NCBI GenBank assembly: GCA_965112155.1
Contig: OZ218103.1
Origin: Podarcis liolepis
Lineage: Eukaryota
Length of the DNA: 64,000 nucleotides
Strand: one strand, 5' to 3'
Position 1 is the first letter of the stretch. The number at the start of each line of letters is the position of its first letter. The notes beneath the pieces were generated by a model, which ran no database searches, was not told the origin of the DNA, and worked only from the letters and a program-made list of their open reading frames with translations. A program made the position numbers and the translations under genes. Below, in pieces: positions 6,035 through 56,913 of the stretch.

Positions 6035-6525
6035 CAGGGGTCGGCAAACTAAGGTCTGCGGGTCGGATCAGGCTCCATAGCCTTCAGGATCCGGCCTGCA
6101 GACTGTCCATGGATCCGCATGTGGATTCTGTTCGTTCGGGCTGTGCCATTTCCGCCCCTGTGCCATTCAATTCCCTTCCTCCCTCCCTCCTCCTGGCTTC
6201 TCCCCACTCTGCCTAGAGGAGGAAGGGGGCAGGGCTGAGCTGGCTGAGCGCCATTTTAAGCAGCCCTTCTCTGGAGCCAGCTTTTTTGCGCTGCTCATCT
6301 TCCCTCTGCCACCGCCGCCCTGGTGCTCCTGTGGGCCAAAGAGTGGAACTGGCAAACTTGCTCTGCCTACCCACGAGAAGCAGCAGCGGTGGTGGCAGAG
6401 GCGGTGGCGGTTGGCAGCGGCAACCCCTGGGAAGGTAAGCGCAGCGGCTGGGGCTGGGGGGTGGGGAGGACTACTTGCCCCCCTCGCCTCGTCTTCCAGC
6501 TCTCCCCCCCCCCCCGGTGCCACTT
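6035..6525 (+). mobile_element. Truncated hAT (Charlie-like) element with GC-rich promoter/exon-like interior
   Basis: Starts with the hAT-type terminus CAGGGGTCGGCAAACT (6035-6050). Interior has YY1-type CGCCATTTT (6249-6257), a decayed (GCG)n run and a donor GAAG|GTAAGC at 6434/6435. No right TIR seen. Confidence 0.7.
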
Positions 6526-33900: not shown

Positions 33901-36900
33901 AACTCTAGATTAAATAGGCTTCTTTCCAGAATGCTATATAAATATATTCAAACCCGATTAGTCTTATTAAGACAGGGCAGGGATTAAAGGATCCCCTTTC
34001 TGTGCATAAGTTGATTCAGAAAGTACTATATAGATTCACAGGAAAACTAAGGCTATCAAATATGCAAAACCACTATGTTCACATCCCTCTGTTAAGTGTG
34101 TTAATCTGAAGGTGATCTGCAGGAACCAGTAGTCTATGTGTCCTTCCCTGCCCTAGACTAAACAAACTGATCTATAATTATGTTGAATCATCTATTGGGG
34201 AGGGGGGCAGAGAAGTAGCTTGTAGGCATTGTATCTCATACAGTATTTGTAACATGCTTAACAGTCCTCCGAAATCTGCTCTTATAATAACCCTTTGAGG
34301 TGGCTTGCTAATATTCACATACATGCAGCATTTTCAGATATGTATTTTATTAAGATATGTCCTTTACAAAAATGCCTGGTACTCCATTTTCTGCAGGTAG
34401 CTTTGATGTTAAAACCAAATTATCCACATTGATGAAGGCCTTGCAAAGCTAAATACATTTTTATTTTAAAAAGGAAACAAAGAATTGAACTGTATGACTA
34501 CTAGATTTTACATTTTCAATAATGGGGAAAACATCTATTTTTTATTGTTGTTTTACTATGGAGTAGCTTTAATGCCTTAGGAACAAGCTGACCAGAACAA
34601 CCATGGGTCATCACTGAAAGGGAATAAAGGAGCCATCTTACCACCTACCTTAAGAGTCACTCATTTGCCTGAAACACCACCCACAAAATCAGAACCCCCA
34701 ATTTCAAGATTCCAGCCTAGAATATGACCTGATTAATAAAAGACTCCATTCTTTATCAAGGGAAAAGAGCTTATGGTAGTCACCAGGATCTGTGCCACCA
34801 TATAAAACTCCTATCTACCTCCATCTGTCTTGCCTCACTAGTTGGACATCCATGTCCTCTAGCTCAAACCTTTGGCTGCAAAACACTGAGCTGCCTCTGA
34901 GTACTTCCATCTGAGCAGGTTCCTGAGGGTTCCACCTTGCTCTGCAGGATTTGCCCAAGACAGGACATTTTCTGAAGCTATATAATGATGCCTTCACTGC
35001 CAAGCTGTTAACTCAAATGAGCACAAAGCAGGTGCCATACCTTGTCTTTTCCAACACTATTTGAAGACAGGACCTACTCTAAAATGGGGCAAATTCATTT
35101 TAACAAATGAAACCAGTATGGAGTTCCACAGGGAGGGTGTGCATATTAACAGTGAGAAACTGGCTGCTCTATCTTCACCTCCTCTAATTCTATATTATGA
35201 GAATAATAAAACTGTTTGTATTGCAAATGCAGCTTCCTAGTCTTTTGTGCGAGGCCAGGGTGATTTAGTCTGATTCATATTTGATTCTCATCGCTGTGCA
35301 TTGCATTTAATGGATTGTTTGCTTTAATGTTTTGTTAAAAAATTGTGCTGGGTGAAAGTTCTCATCTACCAGCTACCATCCCCATTAGTCCTTCTCGCTG
35401 TTAGAAGCAGACAATCAGGGAAGCTATTTTCCAAGAACTTTAATTTTTTTCCCCTTTTGTGTCCACGAGCTTATCTTATATTAACATAAATTCTATGGCT
35501 TTCTTATCTGGACTCTGTCGATCCAGTGTATTCATAGGAGTAGTGCATTTCTCATCTGCTCAAACCTATCACAACTCAGTTCTACATCATTAGCTTGCTG
35601 CGTTGAGACACAACACAATTTTTATTCTTTAATATTCATACATAAGGTTGTAAAGCCATTGTTCTCCAATTTCTAAGCATTAATAGTCACAGATCTACAG
35701 TTGTATTTTCTTCAGAAGAAGATTTATTTTTATAAGTAATTAACTTGAATTATAGCTTTCAGCAATACGGTATAGTTTCACATTCATTTACTAGTTTTAC
35801 TTTGATTCTTTATGCCTAACTTTCCTTGATTAGGAAAACTTCAGGGCCCATATTGTGGCTACCTTTAGTCGCAAAAGTCAGTGGTATGTTTCCTCTTGGT
35901 CAAATTCATATACTCACTACTTGAGAAAATTTCAAAATATGCATAGGTACTGGCAGTGCAGGCAGAATGTGTTTGCTACATGCCCAAACAGGGACAGGAA
36001 GGTCCTGCTAAACCTAGAGTCAGGCCTACACCCATGTCTGTTTCACCATCTAGCCTGCTTCCTAGCTCAGCATATCCAAGGCTGACCCAAGGTCGGTCAG
36101 TGAGCTTCATGGCTGACTGGGGATTTCAATCCAGCACCTACTGCAATATTATAATCACCATACCACACTGGTTCTCATACCATTGTACAATATGCCTCCC
36201 CTCCCCTCCTCATGTAGACACTTCAGTTGACTCTATCCAGAGACAATAGTCACCTCATTTGAGTTCAACACTCCATCAGAAGGATGGAAAAGAAGCAGGA
36301 ATGAGAGAAGCTCAAAAGCATGAGAGAAAGAAAAATCAATAAGAGGGGTTGTCAGAAATAAAACGAGAACCACAAAATGCTATTAAGTAGTACTTCTTCA
36401 TTTATTGGGGTGTCTTTCCTATTGTTAAATATCCATATTTGGGGTGCTGTTTCTGGAGGAGCAGGACAGGAAACATTTGGTCCTGAATTCAAAATTAGCA
36501 AGGGAGGGTATGTAGTAGTTTCTAATGAACTGTCATATGTTTTCTGCTCTAATTATCCAGATACTAGTCCATGTCCCATATTATCCTGGTGGTATGGTTA
36601 CATCAAGGAACCCCAACTGTATAGTAATATTCAATTCTCAACAGGTTTATAGGGGGAAGAAAATGAAAATTGCTCACACAAACACACAAAATCATTGTTT
36701 AAATCAGCCGAAAGTGAGCACCACTCAACATAGGCTATTAACTTCACAGAAAGGTGCCCATGCAATTTGGATTGTCAGCTGCAATCACAGCAACAGGATA
36801 ACATGCCAGGCAGTTCTGAGTTCTTAATATGGGGTGCAGTTTATTGCTAGAGAATCAGCAAAAAGCAGAATCTGCACTGGAACCCCAAGGGCTAACACAG

Positions 36901-38663
36901 AAAGCAGATGCTATAAAACTTGTCTCAGCCACAGGGTCAACAATGAAGAATACTAGTTTTTGGCAGAACATAAAAGCAAATTGTATTGCCATCTTCTTTG
37001 TTGATAAAGGAAACCAATGTTATATCTGATGATGAATATTTACCTTTATAATAAGGCTTTCGTATTGCATTGTTATAAGTTCAAAGCCACATTTACTGAC
37101 TTTCTGGATTCACTTTCAAAACTGCCTAAAAGCATTATAGAACTTTATGGGTTTTTTTATTGTGAATATAGTCCCAAATGTCTTTAGGTTACCCGAGGTC
37201 ATGAAAGGCAGGTAAAGATCCCTTTCAGGAAACAAGTTCCATCTTCAGTGCAACTCAGCCTCTTAGAAGGTTACTACCAAAAATAAGGGCTCCCTACCTT
37301 CATGCTCATAGGCATAAATTAAATGGATCACCAGCTAAGGTCAGAAGAAATATTTCTCGCTGGTTTAGTTTTATGCTTCAATCTGAACGATGCATTCTTA
37401 AAGAAGATGTTAGCCCTGATGTTTCTTTTTCTGTTTATAAAGCTTATTAATTTTACAAGTGGATACCTAACAGACACACAATGCAAAACTATTATTGTCC
37501 ATGGTCTGTTTTATGACAATGAGTGGTCCCATGAAAACATTCGGCCATTTTGTTTCAGAAGCCAAGAATGAGTTGCCTTTTGAAACAAACAAAGGAATCC
37601 CTTGGGCTTCCAATGCAGCTCCAGATATTCATGCCATTTCAAATTTTGGCCTCACTCACCCCTGCATGTGATAAAGCTGTGTGCAGCCCACGGATTCTGT
37701 GTTGAAGTACTCTTGCAGCCCACTTGGTATGAAAAGTTGTGCCAGAGCATACTTCAAGTGGGAAAGTGTTCCACAACTAGGGCACAAGTGAGAAGGCAGT
37801 AGACAATTTGAAGGCAACTTGTTATGAACATAAGTCACAATTCCGCATGACAAAGGTCAGCTCACGTGCCAAATAGGGCTGCCCTAGAATATCTGAGCAC
37901 AGAGGGGGTTCATTTATTGCAGGGGGTTGTTCTTGATTACTTTTGAATTCACTTAGTGTTAGCATTTGCCCAGTTTCTATTTTAAATTGCATGATCCATA
38001 AGGTCAACAGTTGATTGTATTTTTGTCCTTCAATACTTCTTAACAAGTTGGAAGAGTTTAATAGAAATTAAATAATTCATATCCCATGTATGCATGGCTC
38101 TTCTGATAATGCTATTTCTAGGGTTATATATAACACAACCTAACCCACAACAGTGGAGGCCCTTTTGTATCCTTTGCACATGAATGTGCTTGCATGTGAG
38201 CAACACTGACCTCACCTGCCTTCCTAATGTAAATTTAGGATTTGTCTTCTATGGAGTGTACATTGGGCACATATATTTTAACTGGCTTGTTGACTGATAG
38301 ACATGTGGACATTTCATGACTCCTGATATTTGCTGACTATATGACAGACAAATGGGACCTGCAACAAAATGTTATAGATTGGAGAGCTTCTGAGTGCCAG
38401 TCAGTCAGCCATGTCCTTTTCTAGGATACTGCAGTTGCATCCTGACTCCACCCCAGTCACCATTCTGTGGCCATCAAGCACTCCCAGTCTTCATTTAGCT
38501 GCTTTTGATTCTGCCTCCCTCCTGATTCTTTTTCTCATGAAGATTTTTTGTACATCTGCAAACTTTTGGGCTTTCAGAACCTGCTAATACTTCCCTCTTG
38601 TGCCCGGAAGGCGTTGTTTTGGCTACATAAGAATCCACACTCGTTAATGGGTTTGCTATTAGG

Positions 38664-38777
38664 CAGGAATAGCCAACATGGTGCCCTCCATCATCCCTGG
38701 CTGTTGGCCATTCTGACTGAAGCTGATGTATGTTATAGTCTAACAACATCTGGAAGGCAACATATTGGCTACCTCCG
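38664..38777. mobile_element. Fold-back hAT MITE (older copy)
   Basis: CAGGAATAGCCAACATGGTGCCCTCCA...TCTGGAAGGCAACATATTGGCTACC inverted termini with the family core. Confidence 0.65.
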
Positions 38778-38849
38778 GTATAGCGTAATCCGTTTCCATT
38801 TCAAATACTGGTATATTACTTTAGGGACAGTTTTGACCATATAAAGGTA

Positions 38850-39200
38850 CTCCTACTCTTTGCTTCCTGATACTTAACTTGTTCCTGATCCACAAGAGGA
38901 ACTCTCCTTTTATTCCATGACTGCTAAGCTTACTCAGGCGCCTATTCAAGGTACCTTGTCAAATGCTCTTTGAAAGTCCAGGCACACTATGTCAACAGGA
39001 TCATTTCTATTTTTATTGCTTGTTGACACTCCCAAAGAACTCTGCATCAGCAAGGCTTGTTCTTCTTAATGCATGGTTATTTTATCCTGAACATTTCCCA
39101 CCAGTTTTCCAGGGACAGATGTTAAGCTAGTCGGCCTGTAGTTTCCAGAATCCTCCCAGATCACTGTTTTAAAAATTGTGTTATAGTGGCTATTTTCCAA
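38850..39200 (-). mobile_element. CR1 LINE ORF2 (reverse transcriptase) fragment
   Basis: Peptide EDSGNYRPTSLTSVPGKL (ORF 39066-39320) matches the CR1 RT motif; the fragment is degraded. Confidence 0.82.
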
Positions 39201-39377
39201 TAATGCATCTCCATAGAGCTTAAATAACACACAAACAGAGCAATCCCCCACACCCTTGGCAGCTTTCCAGCAGTATTGAAGCCCAGAGATTATACACCAC
39301 TCTAGTAAAGGCAGAAACACAAAGCAAATTATAGAAAAAGAAGTTCCCCACCATCACATAATTTATGTAGTCTATAG

Positions 39378-40264
39378 CAGTGTTTCCCAACCGGTGTTCC
39401 GCGGCACACTAGTGTGCCGCCGAACATTGCCTTGTGTTCCGTGGGAGGGAGACGGGCGAGTCGGGCGGCGAGAGGCGGGGCGGCGGCGGCGAGCACACGC
39501 GGGGCGGCGAGCGAGCGAGCTCCCACATCCCATCGCCGCTCGCTTCGGCCGGCCTACTGGAGGAAGGCGCGAAAACCCGGCGGGCTTTTGGGTGGGCGCC
39601 AAGCAAGAAAGGCGGGAAGGCTCTGGTCCCTCCCCTCCCGGCGGGGCTCCCGCACGCACCTTTCTGCGCCGCCGCGTCCCGCCTAAGCAGCAACAGGAGG
39701 AGGAGGAGGGAGGCCAGCGCCGGCCGGGTCCCCCGGGGGAGCGGGCGCTCCGGGCTGCTCACCATACCCCGCGTCTCGGGCGCAGCAGCCAGCAGTCCGA
39801 ATGCATCCCGAGCCGCGCTGCTCTCGCCTTGCCTCCTTCTTCGCGCCTCCTCCCGGCTCGCGCGCCGTCCCTGCGCGGATCCGTCCAGCCTCCGGCCGCC
39901 GCCGCCGCCCCCTCCTCTTCCTCTCCTTCCCCCACCCACCAACCCGCACGGCGCGCTCCCACCGCCCCCGATGGGCGCAACCACTTCCGGGTCCGCTGCA
40001 GCCGCCCCTTCCCCGCCTCCGGCAGCCGAAAGTCCCCCAGCGGAGCCCGTCTGGCCACTCCCCCCGCTCCCTGCCCACCTCCCGGTGTTGAGGCGCCCTC
40101 TTTCGTTGCTTCGCGGGGAGGGAAAAAACTTTGACTTTTGTGCGTCCCTCCCGGCGTGACGCTGCGCGCTGACGTCACGGGGCGGGGCTTTAATGGTGGT
40201 GTGCCGCGAGATTTTTTTCCGGTAAACAGGTGTGCCGTTGCCCAAAAACGTTTGGGAAACACTG
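39378..40264. mobile_element. Non-autonomous hAT (Buster/Charlie-type) DNA transposon carrying a GC-rich cargo (Pack-TIR-like)
   Basis: Left end CAGTGTTTCCCAA (39378-39390) and right end TTGGGAAACACTG (40252-40264) form a perfect 13-bp TIR. Identical 8-bp TSD GTCTATAG at 39370-39377 and 40265-40272, with central TA fitting the NNNTANNN preference of Buster-type hATs. Subterminal GTGT(G/T)CCG(C/T) repeats at both ends. No transposase ORF. Confidence 0.93.
39444..40192 (-). promoter_or_regulatory. CpG island resembling a Pol II promoter, 5'UTR/first exon and start of intron 1, held as cargo inside the hAT
   Basis: Very GC- and CpG-dense by eye. GC box GGGGCGGGGC 40179-40188; CRE TGACGTCA 40170-40177; half-CRE TGACG 40157-40161; ETS-type CCGGAAGTG on the minus strand 39982-39990; (GCC)n run near 39895-39909; minus-strand donor ATG|GTGAGC with exon end at 39763. 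Confidence 0.75.
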
Positions 40265-40339
40265 GTCTATAGAGCCGGTGTCTGTAACCCACACACACAA
40301 AAAGACTCCCAGGCAATTAGAGATGTTTGCATAATTAGA

Positions 40340-40565
40340 TGTCAATGTGTGCAGGCCATTCCTCTTCCGGCCCTTTCTTCATCTTGCCGCTTGGCTGCAG
40401 GGGCCATCCAGCCTGACAGTGCTGCTATTTAATGTCAGGTCAATTCATAATAAGATCCCACTTATCCATGATTTGATCATGGACAAGGTAGCCAACCTGG
40501 TTTGTATTAATTACCAAGACTTAAGTGGGTAAGCTGGGTGGACTGAATTTGACCCAGCTGTGCCT
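40340..40565 (+). mobile_element. L2-clade LINE endonuclease N-terminal fragment
   Basis: Peptide LTVLLFNVRSIHNKIPLIHDLIMDKVANLVCI resembles the APE endonuclease start motif LLNARS..NK...I.DLI....DL.CITETW. Confidence 0.75.
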
Positions 40566-42929
40566 GAGTGGGCCTTATTTATTTAAGGATGGTGCAACAG
40601 TGTGCAATCCTTAATGGTGGAGCTTCAGGGGCTTATGTTGGTTCTTTTTGCCCTCTTTATAACCATGTTTTGCATTTCTTCAAATATGGCAGCACTACTC
40701 CTGCATATTTATATTCTCTGTTAATCATGACATCATGAGTGGAAACAGGGCAAGCCAAACAGTGCTGAAGGGCAACAAAATCAATCCAAGCTTCTCATTA
40801 AAAGGTAAAAGCGTCAATAATCTTTGTCAGGCCTTTTTATCTTGTGGTTTAGCACACTGTGATCCCTTAGGCAACAACTGTTATTGAGATTTTAAAATGA
40901 TCCTTGATTTCACATCTCCACCAGATTAACTCTTTGGCTACCTGATGAACATTAACATTGCCACTTCCAGCACCTAAGGGCAGCCATGCAATAAAGCAGC
41001 AGCTTCCTGAAATCTGAGATCAGAAATGATCTGTGGCAGGTATCTAATACCAGTTGCTGTACAGCGAGAGTCAGCAAACACAAACTATGGCTCCCACCAT
41101 CCCTTGCCATTGCCCATGCTTGTGAGTTTCAGTGCAGCAGCATCTGCAAGGGCCAAAGGTTCTCAACCCCTGCTGTAATGAATGTAATGGAACAATTTAC
41201 ATTTTGGAAAATAATTATTTTAGGTAATCCCTTCATTTTCACTTATTTTTCCTATTAATCACAAAGTTTTAAACTTGTTTCCCAGCTCTTTCCAAGGCTT
41301 ACCCTTTTATGTAAATTTCTATTCTTTCCATCCATTTGTATCCTTAAAGGATGTAGAGCCTGGTTGAACCACACAACCTTTTGCAGACAATTATCATGCT
41401 CAATATCCTCTTTCTAAATTAAAAACAGCAACCCTGTGATTTATTTCCCTGTTCTTTCCAAGTTCTGGGAGTGTGCCAAGCCACTGCAGTGGGTAAAAGA
41501 GGGGGAAAGATACTCAGGTGTACTGCAGGGGAGCCAGATGTCACTATTGAAAACCTTGCTTCTTGCACCTTTCTAAATCCCAATTGATGTTCTGCATGAA
41601 TGGGACCATCCGAACACATTTAGAATTTTGTACTAGGTGAAATTCAGTGGCAACTATTCTATGATTGAGTGGGTTGCAGGACTGCTAGCCAGTGATCTCT
41701 GTCAAGCCCGGGTACTGCACATCTGACCCAAAATATTGCAGAGTAATATTACTGCTAGGTAGCATTTTGCAATTATGGAATAGGTGGCTTAAACTCTACA
41801 GTCTGACTCTCTCATACATAGAAGACAATGAAATGGATGACTGTTTTCCACTGCCATGTCAGATTCTTTATTTCATTCACAGAAGCAAAACTTCAGGAAT
41901 TGCAGTAGTGAAAATGATTCTAAATTGTCACATTTTTCAATACCGCATTACATTGAAACCTGTGTTTTTATCAGCCTTCCACAGACACACTTTATTTTAG
42001 CTGTGATGTGACTCCCTCCTGTATAGGATTAAAAATAAATACAGTTTCCTAAAAGTAGAACCTAGCCTCCTCCTCTAAAAGTGAAGAAATTCTGTTGAGA
42101 AAAAGAGAGAAGAGAACAGCAACAGAATACAGTTTATAGGAAGTCTTCTAAAAACTAGCATTCATTTATTAGACAACTCCCCTCTTGCAGGAAAACAGCA
42201 TCTATCTACCAATGCACAGGCACTTAACTTAATCAACAGCCTTCTTCTAGCAGTAGAGTATGAATGCAGAATTGCAGAATAAACATTCTGATTTATTACA
42301 CTTGCTACAACTGGATAGCATTTTATGATAATTATATACACTGTGCTTATATCATTGAAAGGGTTTTTGAAAATTCCCCCTCCCCCTTAAATGTTGATTT
42401 TGGGTCACAAAAGCCTATATGTAGAAAATAATTTGTATTTGAAAACATTTAATTTGAAAAATTAATTATACAACACTTCCTATATTTGTGCTTTTCATTC
42501 ATCCTTACCAGGACCTTGTGAGGTCACTGTAGTTTATTTATAGAAGAAAAACTGAGACAGATGATTAGATCAGCCAGTGAAGTTATGGCTGAGATGCATT
42601 TGGAACTAAAGTTTGCACAAAAGCCGTGTATTTTGCATACTCCAGTCAGGTGTTCATTGAACAACCAAAAAAGTAGGCTGTGCTCCAGGGAAATGGAATA
42701 TGTTTTCTAGGGTAGGATGGGGGATGCTAGCTTATTCAATTAGGAAACCAAGCCATTTGAATTGCGTAGTCAAGACTTGTCCCTGTCCGCCACATAGCCG
42801 GCAGTAGAGATTATTGTAGGTTGAAGGCTCCTGCAGTTCTAGACCATGAGGAACGGTGCCTCCAAACCCCAGAGTGGGAGCTAAATTTGGTGCCAACAAA
42901 GATGGTGGTAGCAAAATATTCCATGGGAA

Positions 42930-48420: not shown

Positions 48421-51400
48421 CAAGGCAGGGCATTCACATACCAGCCAAATCGTGGGGGTGTGGCTGTGAGGCACACTGTGCTAGCCCATGTGGTGATCAT
48501 CTGAACCACTCGTGTAATGAGACCATACATATGACAGTATATTGATATAGAGCATTCATGAGCTATGTTGATTCATACAAAAATTGTGTGTGTGTGTTAT
48601 ATTCATAAGAATATTATACAATACTACTTTTTAAGAAACACACCATTTAAAATAAATAAAATAATGAATATATATTGAAATGTTCTGCAAAACGCTCAGT
48701 GTGAATGGCCTCCCTGCTCCTCTGGGCTGGACGACGCTCTGCCTGGGCTGGACGAAAATGGAACTGAGTTTCTCAAAGCAGTTACTTGCTACCACAGCTA
48801 GTGGAACCAGAGAAATTTGAAAGCCACACCATGCAGAGAGCGTAGTAAATTGTTTTCCAAACAAAACCAGGCGATACAAAGAGGCACGTTTTCAAACAAT
48901 GCAAGTTTCAGCAAAAGCTGCATGTTGGTCTGAATTTCCTGGGTTTGACTAGCAGGTTAATTTAGCATGCTCTGTTGCATCAGTTTGTTGAGTTATGCTA
49001 TGTAGCAAGCTGTCACACTGTAGAAAGCATGACGTATCATCCCAGTGAGGCATGAAATTAGAAAGATGTGCCTTGCTGGGTGAACCCTGGATCAACCAAA
49101 CTTGATTTTCACTCAAACCACGGTTTTTGTTTTCTTCAAGTTTTGCGAAGCAAAAACAAATACTGTAGAGAAACGCCCCTAGCTCAGCAGTGCCAAGACC
49201 CTGGCTCCACACTGGCATGTTCCCCATCAAGTATATACATCTATTTGGATATCAGGAACTACAGAGGAAGCAGTAGGGAAAAGAAGGGCCTGAGTTGTTG
49301 CATAAGCTCTACCAAATAACCCTCATCTGCCTCAGAAACTGACAATTCCTATTGTTTGCTTTGGCTATTAATCAGATTTCAATACAGTGCAGGTTATTAT
49401 TTTTATCATGTGGACTATTTATTATATGAAATTTTATATAGACCAGTCCCCAATCAACCCACTTAATGGAGGGGGGGGGATACAAATGAAGTAAACAATC
49501 ACAATATTAGTTTGGATCCAAAGATGCCCTTCTATGACTAGAAGAGCTGCTTCTATATGCAGGAGGATGGGCAATCCATTGGAGGCAGCCATAGACCAAA
49601 AGCTGGAGTAGAAATTTCCCCCAGTAGTTTTATGTGCTATTTCCAGTGCTGTTTCAGAGGTCCTCCAATGTGTTCAGGGGGCTCAGGAGAAAGGGACAAA
49701 AGGCAAAAATCTCAGACAAGCATCCATCTGTGAATGGAATGCTTGATCATGGGATCTCTGGCTCCAACCGTGTGCAGAGACATGCCTCAGGTTTATATGC
49801 AACTCTGGCTTGCTTAGTTTTGTATTGCTATGTCACCCCATGCTTCTTATAATTTGAACTGAGTATATAATTGCTGGCACAGTATTTTAAAGGCAGGGGA
49901 CAAATTTCCCTTTCAGCCTATTTGACTACTAATTAAAGCAAGATATATATATAGGCTGCAGGTGAGAACTGCAAATGTTTTTTCTAAAAAAAAATGACAC
50001 AGGTCTCCAAATGTGAGAAATTCCCAACACAGATAATTGGGGGGGGGGGCTTTGAATCACTGTATTTGACAAGTACAGGGGGAAATTGGTTTAGTATGTC
50101 TGACATGTGAACTCAGAAGGCAGACCTGCTGAGTTCAATGGTGCCAGGTCCATGGGCCTAGGCCTGCAACCTAATTGTAGAAATGTAACAAAGAAAAAGA
50201 TATTTTGCTTTATCCATGTCTGACAATTGAGAGAAATGGATGAATGTATCCAAGAATAATCCAAATCAATAAAACATGTGGGAACTCATTAATATCTATT
50301 ATTCAAATATTACGAACCAGAAACATATGCATTTTTAAAAAATGTTTTAAAGTGTTTAAATTTCAATAAAACACCTAAGCACCATTTGATAAAATGCACT
50401 TTCTGCACTATTATTACGTTAATCTTTGTTTTCCACAAAATTCCTTCATAATATAGCATTTCTCATTTCAATAATTTTTTTAAGATAAAAAATAAACCAT
50501 CATACTGAATATGTGCTTTAAGCAAACCTAATAAAACTGTACTTCAAACAACCTTTGCTGAGCCTGTCACTGATAGAAATGTTGTCCTTCAGTTGGTATT
50601 GCATCCCTCATTTCCTTTCATTTATAAAGTTGAGCTGACATTAAGTTTGGTTAATTTCATATATGTGCCTCTAGTTTCTTCAGTCTGGCTTTACAGTTCC
50701 CATGTACATTTGAGGATTTAGAGTGAATTACTGGGCAGAGCTTGACTTCTGACTAGGAATCTTATTAAAGCATTGCCTCAGGGAAGGGTTTTTAATGCAG
50801 CATAAATTATCGTGTCAGTTTTCAGCGACAGCATGGTATTTGCCTTCTTTTTTTGTCTTCTTTCCTCTGTTAACTTTTGAATAACACAGTGTGCAAGCTG
50901 TCAGATGAGTAGGGGAGAGATTGGGGGAGGGGATCTGTAAAGCAAAGAGGTTGATATGTGCAAATGCACACACGAACACACATAGCTGAATGAAGAATGC
51001 ATTGCCAATTTACTTAGAATGGGCCTGCCAAAAATGGGCATTATACTTACCTTCCTGCTCTTTAAAATTATTTGGCTGAGGTACATAAGAAGAACTCTCT
51101 ACAGATTATAAACCTTTTTTCCCCCAAGGCCTATGCATGTGCATTTAGGATACAAATTTATAGCTCAAATACAAACTGGTGTGTTTTTTTTTTGGGGGGG
51201 GGGATCAAAATCTAGAATTAGGCATGACCTGTATGAGGTCCAATTAAAATACCACACAGTACTAAGCAAGCTTTTCAGTTGTCTAGAACTTTTAATCAGA
51301 CTGGATTCAACTAAAATAAATTAGGGCAATAGAGAAAGCTGGCTGAATGTTGAAGCCAGAAAGTCCATGGAACTTTGTGGGACTTACTCCAGCTAAAATC

Positions 51401-53295
51401 AGGCTGCATTAGGAGGAACATACTCTGGATATAAAGGTGTCAAGACATTTCCACAGTGCAGTAACTGAACTATCTCTTATTGGGAGGATTCTCACATAAT
51501 GCTAAAGTACGATCTAGCATTAAGAGTTCTTCAGTGAACCTAAGAGTCTAATGATCTCCTCCTCCCATCTTCTCCTCCAAGATGGTCAAAAGCAGGGCTT
51601 TTTTTTCAGCCGAAGTTACCAGCACCTCTCAGGTTAGTGCCATTGCCATTATAAGAAAACAAGGGAGGTGTTCATTTTCAAATCTTCACGGATTGAAGTC
51701 CCCACTTCTTAATATTGTAGAAGACCCTTAGGTGTGTTCTAAGTTGAATGGTCAGTTTACATGGCTGGCTGGCTAGGCCTACTGGGCTTTTTCATTACCT
51801 TGCATGAACACTGCTGCAGCTGTATATTGCAGAGGAAGATTAGGAGCAAGTCATATTTCAGAAAAACTTGACTGCCATTTTTGATCCTTCTATTGAGGAA
51901 CCCCTAGTGAACTTCCAAAGAAGCCCAGGGTTCATTCCTGGAAGAAGAATATTTGAAAAATTTGTATGTATTGAGTTGACATGGATACTGTTTTGAATAA
52001 CAATTAAGGCACTGACAGAGCACTTTGAGGTTTAGGATAACCATTAGTCCCCAGCATAGTGTGTAGGAGGAGGGGTAATGCACAAGGGCTGTAAACCCAA
52101 ACACAAAACCCATGGGGTCTTCAAAAGGCCCCCATGCTATTATTCATAATGGAGTGCTAATTAGAACTGAGTGACTAATTCACAGAGAAAATAATGTATT
52201 AAATGTGTTCTCAGCCCGTTTTGCCATTTGTAAATTGTCTGCCAGTAGCTTGTGGGTATTATTCTTTATTACCTACTGACTTAACTTTGTGAGTAAATCA
52301 TGGCCTGTTGAATCAACTGAAGTAGTTAATCATGAATCCCAAGTAGTCAAGCTGTGTCAGCTAAATAGATCATATATTTTATTTTTGTTCACTGATTATA
52401 AAAGCATAACTCAATGAATCAAGTTCTCATTGCTCTCACTACATAATTCACTTTGTGCAAACATTTTCTCTTGTTTGCATAACCTTTCCCTTTATGATGC
52501 ATGTGCCACATATAAAATATAAATAAAGAAAAAAATAGGGTTTCCCGGATTTGAAGAATATTTTGCTTTTGGTTTATCTGAGAAGTGGCATAGCCAAATT
52601 CTTAGAGTAGTGGCCTCCAATATCACTGGGAATTGAGGCCTTCCATTCTTAACATTATTGTTAGTGGTGGTGGTAGTACAGTAATAACAATCATAACAAT
52701 AATTTGTACAGGGCTGTTTGCATATGTGGTGCTTTATAAAGAACAATTTCACAGGTTCATTTCCCAAGGGGGCTTGCCATTTAATATAGACACAGGAGAA
52801 CAAGAGTGGAGGTAATCAAAGCAGGGCTAAGCATGAGAAAGAACAGAGTATTATTTTAAACTACACAATTTTGGCTGTGATACACTTGGATCTTGGAGTA
52901 AGTGGGGTTATTCATGTTACATAATCACAACTTATAGAACTACCACCAGGATACAATTTTCATGACAGACATTTGGTGTAGAACAGGAGTGGGGAACTTC
53001 AGGGCCAGGGGCCGAATGTGGCCCCCCAAGCCTCTCAATCTGATCCTTGGGACTCTCTCCAAACCACACCCCTTCTCCAGACACACTCACTCACTATAGA
53101 CCAAACCTGTCACCAGCCCTACTTATCCCCTTCTTTAATGCATTTGCCTGGCTGGAATGTACTCCTGAGCTCTGATAACGCCTCTTGCTTGCCTGGACAG
53201 AGGACAGAGAGGGGTATGCATAGAAACTAGCCCATTGTACAGAAGTACTATTTGTATTCATTGCCCCACCACCCATTTCTGCCTATGCCCCTGCC

Positions 53296-53904
53296 CAGTG
53301 GTGGAGAAACCCCCTCCGGCACCCGGGGCGGGATGCCGAGGGGTGTGGAGAACCGCCCAGTGACGCACGTGTGGCAGTCTGTACAATTGCCGTGCGAGAG
53401 GCAGCCTGAATGGACACCCATACAGCCTTGTTCCAGTATACCTGAAGGAGTGTCTCCACCTCCACCGCTCTGCCCAGACACTGAGGTCCAGCACCGAGGG
53501 CCTTCTGGCAGTTCCCTCACTGTGAGAAGCCAAGTTACAGGGAACCAGGCAGAGGGCCTTCTCGGTAGTGGCAGCTGCCCTGTGGAACGCCCTCCCACCA
53601 GATGTCAAAGAGAAGAACAATTACCAGACTTTTAGCAGACATTTGAAGGCAGCCCTCTTTAGTGAAGCTTTTAATGTTTTACAGACCACTGTATTTTAAT
53701 ACTCTGCTGGAAGCCGCCCAGGGTGGCTGGGGAAATTCTATTCTATTCTATGGACAGCGCATGAGAGTGGCATCCCATATGGACTGCGTGCGCCCTCGGC
53801 TGCTCTACAGCAGGGGGGAGGCAGGGACCATCTTGTCACACCCCCCCCCCCGAGTGGCACCCGGGTCATGGCACCCCCTCCGCCCCCCACTTCGTACGCC
53901 CCTG
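53296..53904. mobile_element. hAT (Tip100-like termini) non-autonomous element, middle layer
   Basis: Termini CAGTGGTGGAG and TACGCCCCTG; 8-bp TSD CCCCTGCC (53288-53295) versus CCCCTGTC (53905-53912), 7/8 identical. Confidence 0.7.
53432..53735 (+). mobile_element. L2 LINE 3' end, inner layer
   Basis: TACCTGAAGGAGTGTCTC...AGGGCCTTCTCGGTAGTGGCAGCTGCCCTGTGGAACGCCCTCCC...AAGCCGCCCAG encodes the YLKE.L...RAFSVVAAALWNALP L2 C-terminal motif. Confidence 0.82.
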
Positions 53905-56636
53905 CCCCTGTCTACTACCAACATGTGTCCCTCAGAAGGGTGCCCAGAAGAAACTGCGACCCTTGGGCTGAGAAAGGTTCCCTAGCCCTGCAGCAGAAAT
54001 AAAAAAGAGTACTATTTTCATAGAGGATGCAGAATATGCAAGTTATAAGAATTTTAGCAAGCAAAGGAAGTGGTGTTTAAAAACATTCCAAAAGAAAGTA
54101 ATAGAAAATTACAATCTAAATGCAGGCTTCAAGAATGGGCCTTTTCTCAGTTTCCTTATTTTGTCATCAGACCAATTAGGATCATTTAAACGTATCAGAT
54201 ATAGAATCAATTATAACCCAGCCCGCCACCGTGGAAAGTTTTCAGAAGGGCAGCTTCACCCTGCTCCCATATGATGATAATCATGGCCACAAACACTATA
54301 CAATAATAGCAATTTTTGAGGCTATTTGTTTCTTCTTGGATATTTGCATCAAATGTAAGAAGATGCTACAGTGTTTTTTGTACCACATGAAGCTGCTTGC
54401 AATACCAAAATAGCACAAATCCAAATTATGATCTTATGTGTTATAATGTATTTCATTGAAGCTCAACACAAAGCAGTAAAGAAATCTATTCAGCACAGTA
54501 ATAAACCAAAATTGAAAGAGATTCCCATTCTGTATAATTGTTGTCTTTAAAACAAAACCTCTGCTCATTAGTTTGTCTCATTTTTAACTCTTTTCAATAA
54601 AGTGTGCTGCATTTATGGCTGGTAGTGTTACAGCCTGCAATTATCCACATACAATGTATAATATGATGTTCTTTACCCAAAGCAGCTTTCAATGAGTTGC
54701 AACCCTGACTATACAGAACTGGTTTAAATAAACAATGTGGTAAATGTTGACTACAAGGTCTTGTTTGTCCAGCATTTCCTGGGAGACTTAGATTCGCTAC
54801 TTCAATACACACAGTCCTGGAAAAGCTCAAAGTCTGTGGCACACACAGACCATTGTGTTCGCTTGGCAATCTTTTTGGCAGTCTGGGACACCCTTTGTTA
54901 GTGTAGATGGTACCATCCACATAGAGAAAAGCAACACAACCCCGTGTGCAGGATGGTGCATGCACCACATTTGCATTTTTATGGTAACATGTCAAACCAA
55001 GAAAAAAGAAAGCTCCCTTGCAGGTAGTTAAGAAGACATGGCTTGGTAAGTTGGTATAGAATGTGGCAGTAAAGGCAGCTATATTATGGTGGGCTGCAAT
55101 GATGCATGTAATACAGAAGAAATGGCCTGCCAGGCAGCCAATGGTGGCTGGTGCCCCTTTAGATTGGTGAAGGCAGAGGGAACTTCGTAGGTTTCATAGG
55201 AAACCACAGTGGTAACAGAAAAGAACTTATCACCCTAGTGTGCTGAGCATCCACAGGGCTGTATCTGATATAAAGGACCAGATGTCTGGATTAATAAGAT
55301 GCTAGTACTGCATCAGCAAATAAACATAAGAAGCACTTCAGAGGAAGACATTTTTAGCATGCTTTGGAAAAACTGAATACTTTTCTCAATTTGTACTCTA
55401 CTTGCTCAGAATGTATTCCCTAAGCAATGCACAATTACACGTAAAACGTGACTTTGGCATTGTAATAACTGAAAGTGGCAGGGTGTTGGGGCAGAAAACC
55501 AGGGCCCCACTCAGTAGCATGAACAAGAAGGCCCTGAAAGACACCAGGGCAGTGACATTTGGAAGAAATACACATTGCCATCTAACAATGGGGGGTGGGG
55601 ATCAGCCCATTAAATCCAGAATCTAAAATTAAGTAACTGGGTCTATACAACATAGAATGTGTGTGCAACCAAATTGCTCAGTCCCCTGAGTGCTTCAGAT
55701 TCTGAAGGATGACTTCCCAATGAGAGTCAGACAGGAAGTATAATAATAAAAGCTGCAGCGTGCACTGATATGCACCTGGGGCGCACGGAAAGAGTGTGCC
55801 ATGTGGTCATCAGGTCCTCACATGGCTATATGCTTAGATGCCAGGTTTTTAATTAGCAGGTTTGTCATCTGATGTTCACTAGCCTTGTAGTTAATTATTT
55901 GATAAAAGCAGTTTATTATTCACAATATATTATAAATTTATTATGGCTCATTGCTTTAAAATATTTAATCCTTTGCAGGTCCTTAAACACAAATATGGCA
56001 GCTATTAGCAACCTCTTCAGTGAGGCGTAAAATTGTACCCAAAGGCCTCATAAACAAGGAATGCTTGGGAAAGATTAAATCAGTGTATACAGCTGCAGAG
56101 GAGACCATTAGGAAATGCATTATCATTATGCTCTAGTGTTGTTTTGTTTGCCACTCCACTCCTGTCAGATCTGTCAGCTACCTATATTCTCTCTCTCCCC
56201 CCGCCAATAAATAAGAGATGTTACACCACCTGATTAGGTGGAAATCATTTATCAGGACATACTTCAACTAAGGCAGGATTATCTCCATCAATCTCCTGGG
56301 CCATCCCTATCTCCAGCCATCTAAACCCTAAAGATGATGTCACCCAAAGGATATGCAAACAAAGGGACCACAAGCAAGTGAGGCTCCTTCTGCAATGTTC
56401 ATCACAGGGGTCATCAGAGCCCAAGAGACAAGCCACACCATTCCTTTAGATTACAATGAAAAATTTGCTTAGCTACAAGATGCATGTTCTACCCAAGCAA
56501 GTCTTTCATAACTTCCAGAAGATTTTCCAGCTTTGATTGGACATAATAAACATTTAATTCTAGATGTAAAGAGACTTTTCACAACAAAAGTTTCATATAT
56601 TAAAGGAAAAATAAAAATCTAGTATTGGTTTTCCAG

Positions 56637-56913
56637 NNNNNNNNNNNNNNNNNNNNNNNNNNNNNNNNNNNNNNNNNNNNNNNNNNNNNNNNNNNNNNNN
56701 NNNNNNNNNNNNNNNNNNNNNNNNNNNNNNNNNNNNNNNNNNNNNNNNNNNNNNNNNNNNNNNNNNNNNNNNNNNNNNNNNNNNNNNNNNNNNNNNNNNN
56801 NNNNNNNNNNNNNNNNNNNNNNNNNNNNNNNNNNNNNNNNNNNNNNNNNNNNNNNNNNNNNNNNNNNNNNNNNNNNNNNNNNNNNNNNNNNNNNNNNNNN
56901 NNNNNNNNNNNNN
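56637..56913. other. Assembly gap (277 N)
   Basis: Run of N. Confidence 1.

Follow-up and report, generated by a model that had tools for sequence, protein, structure and literature searches.

A mobile, multicopy hAT element in the lizard Podarcis liolepis that probably carries the core promoter and first exon of a host gene

Much work has been done in plants on cut-and-paste transposons that capture gene fragments, and the animal examples are mostly single, old and immobile copies. Plant Pack-MULEs are said to acquire their fragments with a bias towards GC-rich 5' ends. For animals, 370 Pack-TIRs have been described in 100 genomes, 208 of them hAT elements and four of them multicopy, the latter from frog and alligator with few copies each (Tan et al., 2021; PMC8277862). 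Pack-hAT-N8_XT from Xenopus tropicalis, which carries a 5'UTR fragment, is present in three copies with distinct TSDs, and the text of the same study as searched makes no mention of lizard or Anolis (PMC8277862). Non-autonomous hAT families of the anole often incorporate extraneous DNA (Novick et al., 2010; PMC3014272), and the hAT2_NA MITEs of insects produce 8-bp TSDs in which TA is preferred at positions 4-5 (Zhang et al., 2013; PMC3845634). Here we describe an element from Podarcis liolepis, located in a window of 64,000 nucleotides (contig OZ218103.1, assembly GCA_965112155.1; all positions refer to this whole stretch), that appears to be a vertebrate case with multiple near-identical copies, a polymorphic insertion site and a cargo of CpG-island core promoter, first exon and splice donor.

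Direct reading of 39200-40450 placed the element at 39378-40264 (887 bp), between two perfect copies of the 8-bp TSD GTCTATAG at 39370-39377 and 40265-40272. It begins with the 13-bp TIR CAGTGTTTCCCAA (39378-39390, plus strand) and ends with a perfect reverse complement of it (40252-40264, minus strand); both perfect matches to this 13-mer in the 64 kb are the element ends. This TIR is of the CAG type and within the ~10-25 bp usual for hATs, and it closely resembles published hAT TIRs (PMC3014272, PMC3845634). A scan of the whole window for inverted repeats (10 nt or longer, spaced by 60-5000 bp) with the same 8-mer immediately outside both arms gave this element as the one result, and 30 composition-preserving block-wise shuffles gave none. 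The TSD has TA at positions 4-5 and fits nnnTAnnn as well as nTnnnnAn, this being a single TSD and a consensus requiring many copies. Within the element the GC content is 0.71 and the CpG o/e 0.99, compared with CpG o/e values of 0.14 and 0.09 in the 1.3 kb on each side and 0.20 over the whole window. The edges of this CpG island are sharp and coincide with the TIRs, and no other 200-bp window with GC 0.55 and o/e 0.6 was found in the 64 kb. The CpG richness may reflect mere youth of the insertion rather than an unmethylated state. A Pfam scan of all long ORFs of the element gave no significant match to any domain, so that it has no transposase, and no further family members were found in the window by blastn with the element as query. 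Thus, the perfect 13-bp TIR and 8-bp TSD, the only CpG island of the window enclosed by them and the lack of a transposase, all pointed out in a preliminary description of this DNA, were confirmed.

The window holds other sequences of transposon character. At 6035-6525 the left end of another hAT type, CAGGGGTCGGCAAAC, which is like the TIR of anole hAT-HT2, is followed by GC-rich sequence. No right TIR partner for CAGGGGTCGGCAAAC was detected in the whole window at up to three mismatches, and this element is therefore truncated or one-ended. A GC-rich (0.56) and CpG-poor kilobase at 52984-53990 has the imperfect inverted ends CAGGAGTGGGGAAC (left) and GTTCCCTAGCCCTG (right), which are complementary at ~11 of 14 positions and flanked by 8-mers matching at five of eight; probably this is a DNA transposon of greater age into which other sequence is nested. 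A relaxed scan also returned a 1.9-kb stretch (49014-50893) with the 8-nt TIR CACACTGT and the 8-bp TSD CAAGCTGT, which at that stringency may be due to chance, and a run of 277 N at 56637-56913 is an assembly gap or masked. Nothing significant, and thus no transposase, was obtained in a Pfam scan of ten long ORFs elsewhere in the window; one weak match, Pet127 with 15.9 bits (cut-off 25), was seen among all window and element ORFs scanned.

To delimit the parts of the element, region 36400-41900 was compared with two DNA runs, X1 (organism A) and X9 (organism F), with X15, a probable RNA run of organism F, and with the raw RNA reads X23, also from F. Single-copy flanks had a depth of ~30 in X1 and of 12-16 in X9, and in the bins at the element ends the summed depth, which is not a true copy number, amounted to ~290,000 and ~200,000, respectively (~294,000 in X1 for bin 39344-39527 against ~30 for single-copy DNA). 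At the right end, X1 showed a depth of 375,118 at 40178 and 217,836 at 40223 with a bin mean of 285,410, which requires a high copy number from about 40115 onwards. From the comparison with the flanks, the ends belong to a family of the order of 10^4 copies. Read matches end exactly at 39378 and at ~40264-40269 and then continue into many different flanks (agreement 0.5-0.64), the pattern expected of many insertion sites, and among the RNA reads the loose ends of many flanks start exactly at 39378. Additional loose ends inside the element (left part: 39419, 39493 and 39560; right part: 40115, 40145, 40166 and 40191) indicate that abundant forms of the family share the ends and carry a variety of other, GC-rich cores. 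The core of the present element is unrelated to the family's own interior, since the abundant forms leave it at one of the three left positions and rejoin it at 40115-40191, and cargo depth is 100-300 times below the depth of the ends. The backbone, present in roughly 10^4 copies, therefore comprises 39378-39560 and 40115-40264. Family-shared ends of ~116-183 bp (left) and ~150 bp (right) replace the 65-70 bp per side that had been proposed at first, and the cargo shrinks from an assumed ~750 bp to ~540 bp (about 39576-40114) on the basis of depth and loose ends.

Behind the left TIR, the backbone at 39391-39560 includes four GTGTKCCG motifs and a 16-nt palindrome (39395-39426), and its right counterpart at 40115-40251, assigned from depth and loose ends, has two GTGTGCCG motifs. 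All six GTGTKCCG motifs of the 64-kb window are found within 65 bp of the element ends, compared with 0.46 expected by chance in the whole window, and judged by its position this clustering is the subterminal repeat pattern of hAT elements. In the hATs studied, repeated subterminal motifs are transposase-binding sites. A motif scan located a half-CRE at 40157-40161, a full palindromic CRE at 40170-40177 and a GC box at 40180-40185, all three being part of the high-copy backbone itself, so that thousands of MITE copies may each bear promoter-type motifs. The ETS site at 39982-39990 (minus strand) is the sole promoter motif of this set within the cargo. The CRE, half-CRE, GC box, ETS site and ATG were all found where the preliminary description had placed them; its assignment of the first three to the cargo was not correct. 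Two further observations concern the family as such. The loose-end consensus of its short form contains, after 39560, the sequence GCGCATGCG, which is like an NRF1 site. In addition, an X1 contig with half the single-copy depth joins 40266 to 39376, with the right family end followed by GT+TTAG+AG and then by the left end; this would be two head-to-tail family copies at another locus that share one target-site-like octamer, the spacer being 8 bp with a central TA.

Evidence for mobility came from organism A. An X1 contig of 3,092 nt matches 38966-39377 and 40278-41900, these two parts being separated by the single base A, and contains GTCTATAG once. Its depth of 28.6 equals the full local single-copy depth, and such an empty site, which had been suggested as a test for transposition, identifies the insertion as recent and polymorphic. 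The left flank in X1 is otherwise as in the window (0-1 differences per contig) and the right flank is ~1% different, from which it follows that X1 and the window represent different haplotypes. The occupied allele has the tetranucleotide GCCG one base past its right TSD (40274-40277), and the empty-site contig lacks it. We considered whether the X1 allele is an excision footprint and rejected this, as a single clean copy of the TSD speaks for a site without any earlier insertion; the GCCG difference was likewise dismissed as a footprint sign, because the right flank differs by ~1% overall anyway. In organism F, X9 contigs stop at 39371 and restart at 40315. Contigs running across the joint between cargo and backbone at 40115 had a depth of 1,230 in X1 and 109 in X9, corresponding to ~41 and ~8 times single copy, and differed from the window only at 39685 and 40057, two sites at which all other copies have G. 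It follows that the chimera as such is very young and multicopy (roughly 40 copies in one organism against roughly 8 in a close relative). Both the existence of several copies of the chimera and the idea of a mobile hAT without transposase, now based on the empty site in another individual and on the subterminal motifs at its ends, are thereby strengthened.

The captured part would read on the minus strand. Its upstream portion at 39766-40114, with a depth of ~1,230 in X1 and 109 in X9, is GC-rich with (GGC)n, includes the ETS site and is assigned as putative core promoter and 5'UTR. From the ATG at 39765, 35 codons and one further base form the predicted coding part of exon 1 (39660-39765), an assignment made from the translation, the homologues and the end of an X15 contig. 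The deduced peptide starts with MVSSP, contains a run of eight Leu, ends with AAAQK and is signal-peptide-like. After the last codon the sequence reads G/GTGCGT, and the resulting donor AAG/GTGCGT after 39660 fits the consensus at eight of nine positions. The GT of this donor (39659-39658) starts a predicted intron-1 fragment of 84 nt at 39576-39659. The preliminary description had instead taken ATG/GTGAGC at 39763 as the donor, which fits only seven of nine positions and is not where the X15 contig ends. Between intron fragment and left backbone, 39561-39575 is of uncertain origin, either filler or diverged backbone, as contigs of backbone type leave at 39560 and those of cargo type start at 39576. 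GC-rich DNA of this kind gives long ORFs in all six frames. Overall, the core does not belong to the family backbone and resembles the 5' end of a gene, with an ETS-containing CpG island, an ATG, an exon and a donor, and it was likely copied from such an end in a host gene. The captured promoter and exon 1 suggested earlier thus receive partial support from the foreign core with its ETS site, ATG, signal-peptide-like exon and donor, and had to be revised for CRE, half-CRE and GC box, for the donor and for the length of the exon.

Homologues of the exon region were sought among 5.8 billion proteins by a word-indexed search that covers lengths of about 127-486 residues. In this search a 278-aa ORF through the exon region matched Logan ORF P0001 alone, the exon region by itself matched P0001 and P0002 alone, and the exon region of P0002 retrieved only itself. 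An exhaustive phmmer search with the 35-residue exon peptide gave no hits, and neither the word-indexed search (about 127-486 residues) nor this exhaustive HMMER search with the exon peptide led to an annotated protein. P0001 is an ORF on a Logan contig of 1,239 nt and P0002 one on a contig of 946 nt, both being singletons on one contig each. Both retain the ATG, the Leu or hydrophobic run and the end at the donor, with variable sequence in between and divergence past the donor; in P0001 the ETS block and the bases directly upstream of the ATG are conserved as well. P0002 continues for 195 residues past the donor, in intron-like sequence with no Pfam match. Since the in-frame similarity to P0001 and P0002 extends into UTR and intron, frame conservation was not counted as proof of coding.

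Two long contigs that match the window from 39576 rightwards were found in the DNA runs. The X1 contig (1,477 nt) lies on the window for 238 nt and then extends leftwards for ~1.2 kb of sequence unlike the window, with a mean depth of 212; the X9 contig (2,361 nt) does so for 463 nt and then ~1.9 kb, with a mean depth of 30.4. Under the assumption of a single-copy extension and a shared part at cargo depth, mean depths of 223 for X1 [(1239 x 30 + 238 x 1230) / 1477] and of 31.8 for X9 [(1898 x 13 + 463 x 109) / 2361] are expected, close to the observed values. The extensions past 39576 are thus apparently single-copy DNA in both organisms, and the two contigs may represent a parental locus, in which intron 1 would run beyond the captured 84 nt.

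X15, a run of 110 Mb whose RNA label is a guess, had a depth of zero on all single-copy flanks. It yielded a contig of 504 nt and depth 52 that lies exactly on 39660-40163, and its lower end is the last base of the exon as predicted independently from the donor. DNA copies diverge at 39576 and not at 39660, so a break at 39660 is as expected of spliced RNA with several continuations, and the X15 bin sums leave little room for coverage of 39576-39659. The upper end of the contig lies inside the backbone, which points to a transposon-borne copy as its source and not to a clean parental promoter, unless the parental locus has a member of the family at this very place. In the raw RNA reads X23 the cargo had a depth of 0.7-1.7. 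All six reads at 39685 carry the base of the other copies and share one orientation, with the first mate on the plus strand, from which we infer minus-strand RNA under usual stranded libraries. Indirectly, these data suggest that at least one copy of the chimera, other than the one at this locus, is transcribed and that its captured donor is used in splicing.

Three other explanations were weighed against these data. CpG islands usually mark native promoters, and nothing else favours the view that the region is the native promoter of a local gene and that TIR and TSD are a coincidence or stem from two separate MITE insertions. This view is hardly credible, being already contradicted by the X1 empty site with its single TSD at full depth, by the 30 shuffles that never gave such a structure, by an island that stops exactly at the TIRs and by the multicopy cargo. 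An unlikely reading, although one with more in its favour, accepts a true Pack-type hAT and takes the cargo as non-genic GC-rich DNA or a dead fragment, with silent copies and with ATG, peptide and donor arising by chance. Long ORFs in all six frames, frame conservation that covers non-coding parts too, the very low depth of X23 RNA on the cargo and the missing annotated protein in both searches (word-indexed at about 127-486 residues and exhaustive HMMER with the exon peptide) would all fit this. It does not account for an X15 contig that ends on the exact last base of an exon predicted from its eight-of-nine donor, nor for the conserved ETS block and for two diverged homologues that keep ATG, hydrophobic run and donor and diverge past the latter.

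Internal-deletion derivatives have their model in Ds, which is derived from Ac. If the element were such a derivative of a longer and possibly autonomous hAT, the core would be the transposon's own promoter, leader and first exon. The promoter motifs just inside one end, reading inward like a transposase promoter, agree with this, and so do the longer form that continues past 39576 and the nested boundaries (39419, 39493 and 39560; 40115, 40160 and 40191), which resemble a deletion series; moreover, most anole non-autonomous hATs are deletion derivatives (PMC3014272). On the other hand, in both organisms the extension past 39576 looks single-copy, the most abundant forms of the family switch to different cores at these same boundaries, and the exon peptide resembles a signal peptide and not the start of a transposase. 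P0002 shows no hAT domain in its 195 residues past the donor, and both homologues are single-contig singletons and not repeats. Taken together, we regard a deletion derivative as quite improbable.

We consider it probable that the element is a non-autonomous hAT of the Buster/Charlie type with a MITE-like backbone, whose middle of ~540 bp comes from the 5' end of a host gene and which is still mobile and multicopy. Its backbone would derive from the very abundant MITE-like family, and the middle would have been replaced by an ETS-type CpG-island core promoter, a 5'UTR, a signal-peptide exon 1 of 35 codons, the donor and 84 nt of intron 1. The likeliest route of capture would be either template switching during repair of an excision gap or the joint use of the outer ends from two family copies between which an open promoter lay. 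The 15 bases at 39561-39575 faintly resemble the sequence of the short family form after 39560, a resemblance that would suit a microhomology switch, which we offer as a suggestion. With both TIRs and the subterminal GTGTKCCG motifs retained, the chimera could have been moved by transposase supplied in trans and amplified, to roughly 40 copies in one organism against roughly 8 in the close relative; the copy in the window would be a recent insertion, still polymorphic, and copies might serve as ready-made first exons. A more far-reaching idea, which we put forward tentatively as a possibility, is that one abundant hAT family with CRE/Sp1 ends repeatedly captures CpG-island promoters together with first exon and donor in this lizard lineage and spreads working spliced starts, the present cargo having gone from ~8 to ~40 copies between close relatives and still inserting.

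The apparent vertebrate case would open exon shuffling by DNA transposons, and their dispersal of promoters, to direct tests in a living population. For annotation it matters as well, since dozens of copies per genome could be miscalled as gene starts, given their likeness to native CpG-island promoters and to first exons that encode a signal peptide. If the family does capture promoters repeatedly, it would be a vertebrate counterpart of the 5'-end capture by Pack-MULEs that scatters ready-made first exons.

With plant Pack-MULEs and other Pack-TYPE elements the present element shares the capture and amplification of gene fragments between TIRs (PMC8903248). Pack-MULEs, however, are Mutator elements of plants with 9-bp TSDs and long TIRs, whereas we find a hAT with 8-bp TSD and short TIRs. 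Similar, too, are maize Ds elements that enclose foreign DNA, which retain hAT ends and subterminal motifs around a replaced interior and are moved in trans (PMC3260210); they belong to a plant system, and their cargo is not characteristically a promoter with first exon. The families hAT-HT3_AC and hAT-N3_AC from Anolis carolinensis likewise have 8-bp TSDs with a central TA (PMC3014272). When TIRs alone were compared with the table of that study, those of hAT-HT3_AC and hAT-N3_AC (CAGTGRTTCCCAAA and CAGTGGTTCCCAACCT) were near-identical to CAGTGTTTCCCAACC here (PMC3014272), although gene 5' ends as cargo are not described for the anole hATs there. The TIR CAGTGTTTCCCAAC of Manduca sexta hAT2_NA equals 39378-39391 at 14 of 14 bases, again with the TIR alone compared, and the TIRs from Bombyx, Rhodnius and Heliconius are one base off the same stretch (PMC3845634). 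As Buster/Charlie TIRs are alike across many families, homology or horizontal transfer with insect hAT2_NA is a lead and not a result. The animal Pack-TIRs (PMC8277862) are the nearest match, as they are non-autonomous TIR elements, mostly hAT, that have TSDs and enclose part of a host gene. What sets the present element apart from them is its ~40 copies by depth, its insertion polymorphism and a cargo that would comprise core promoter, exon 1 and donor instead of a UTR piece. The element is therefore probably an animal Pack-TIR, a kind already described, and is notable for being multicopy and active.
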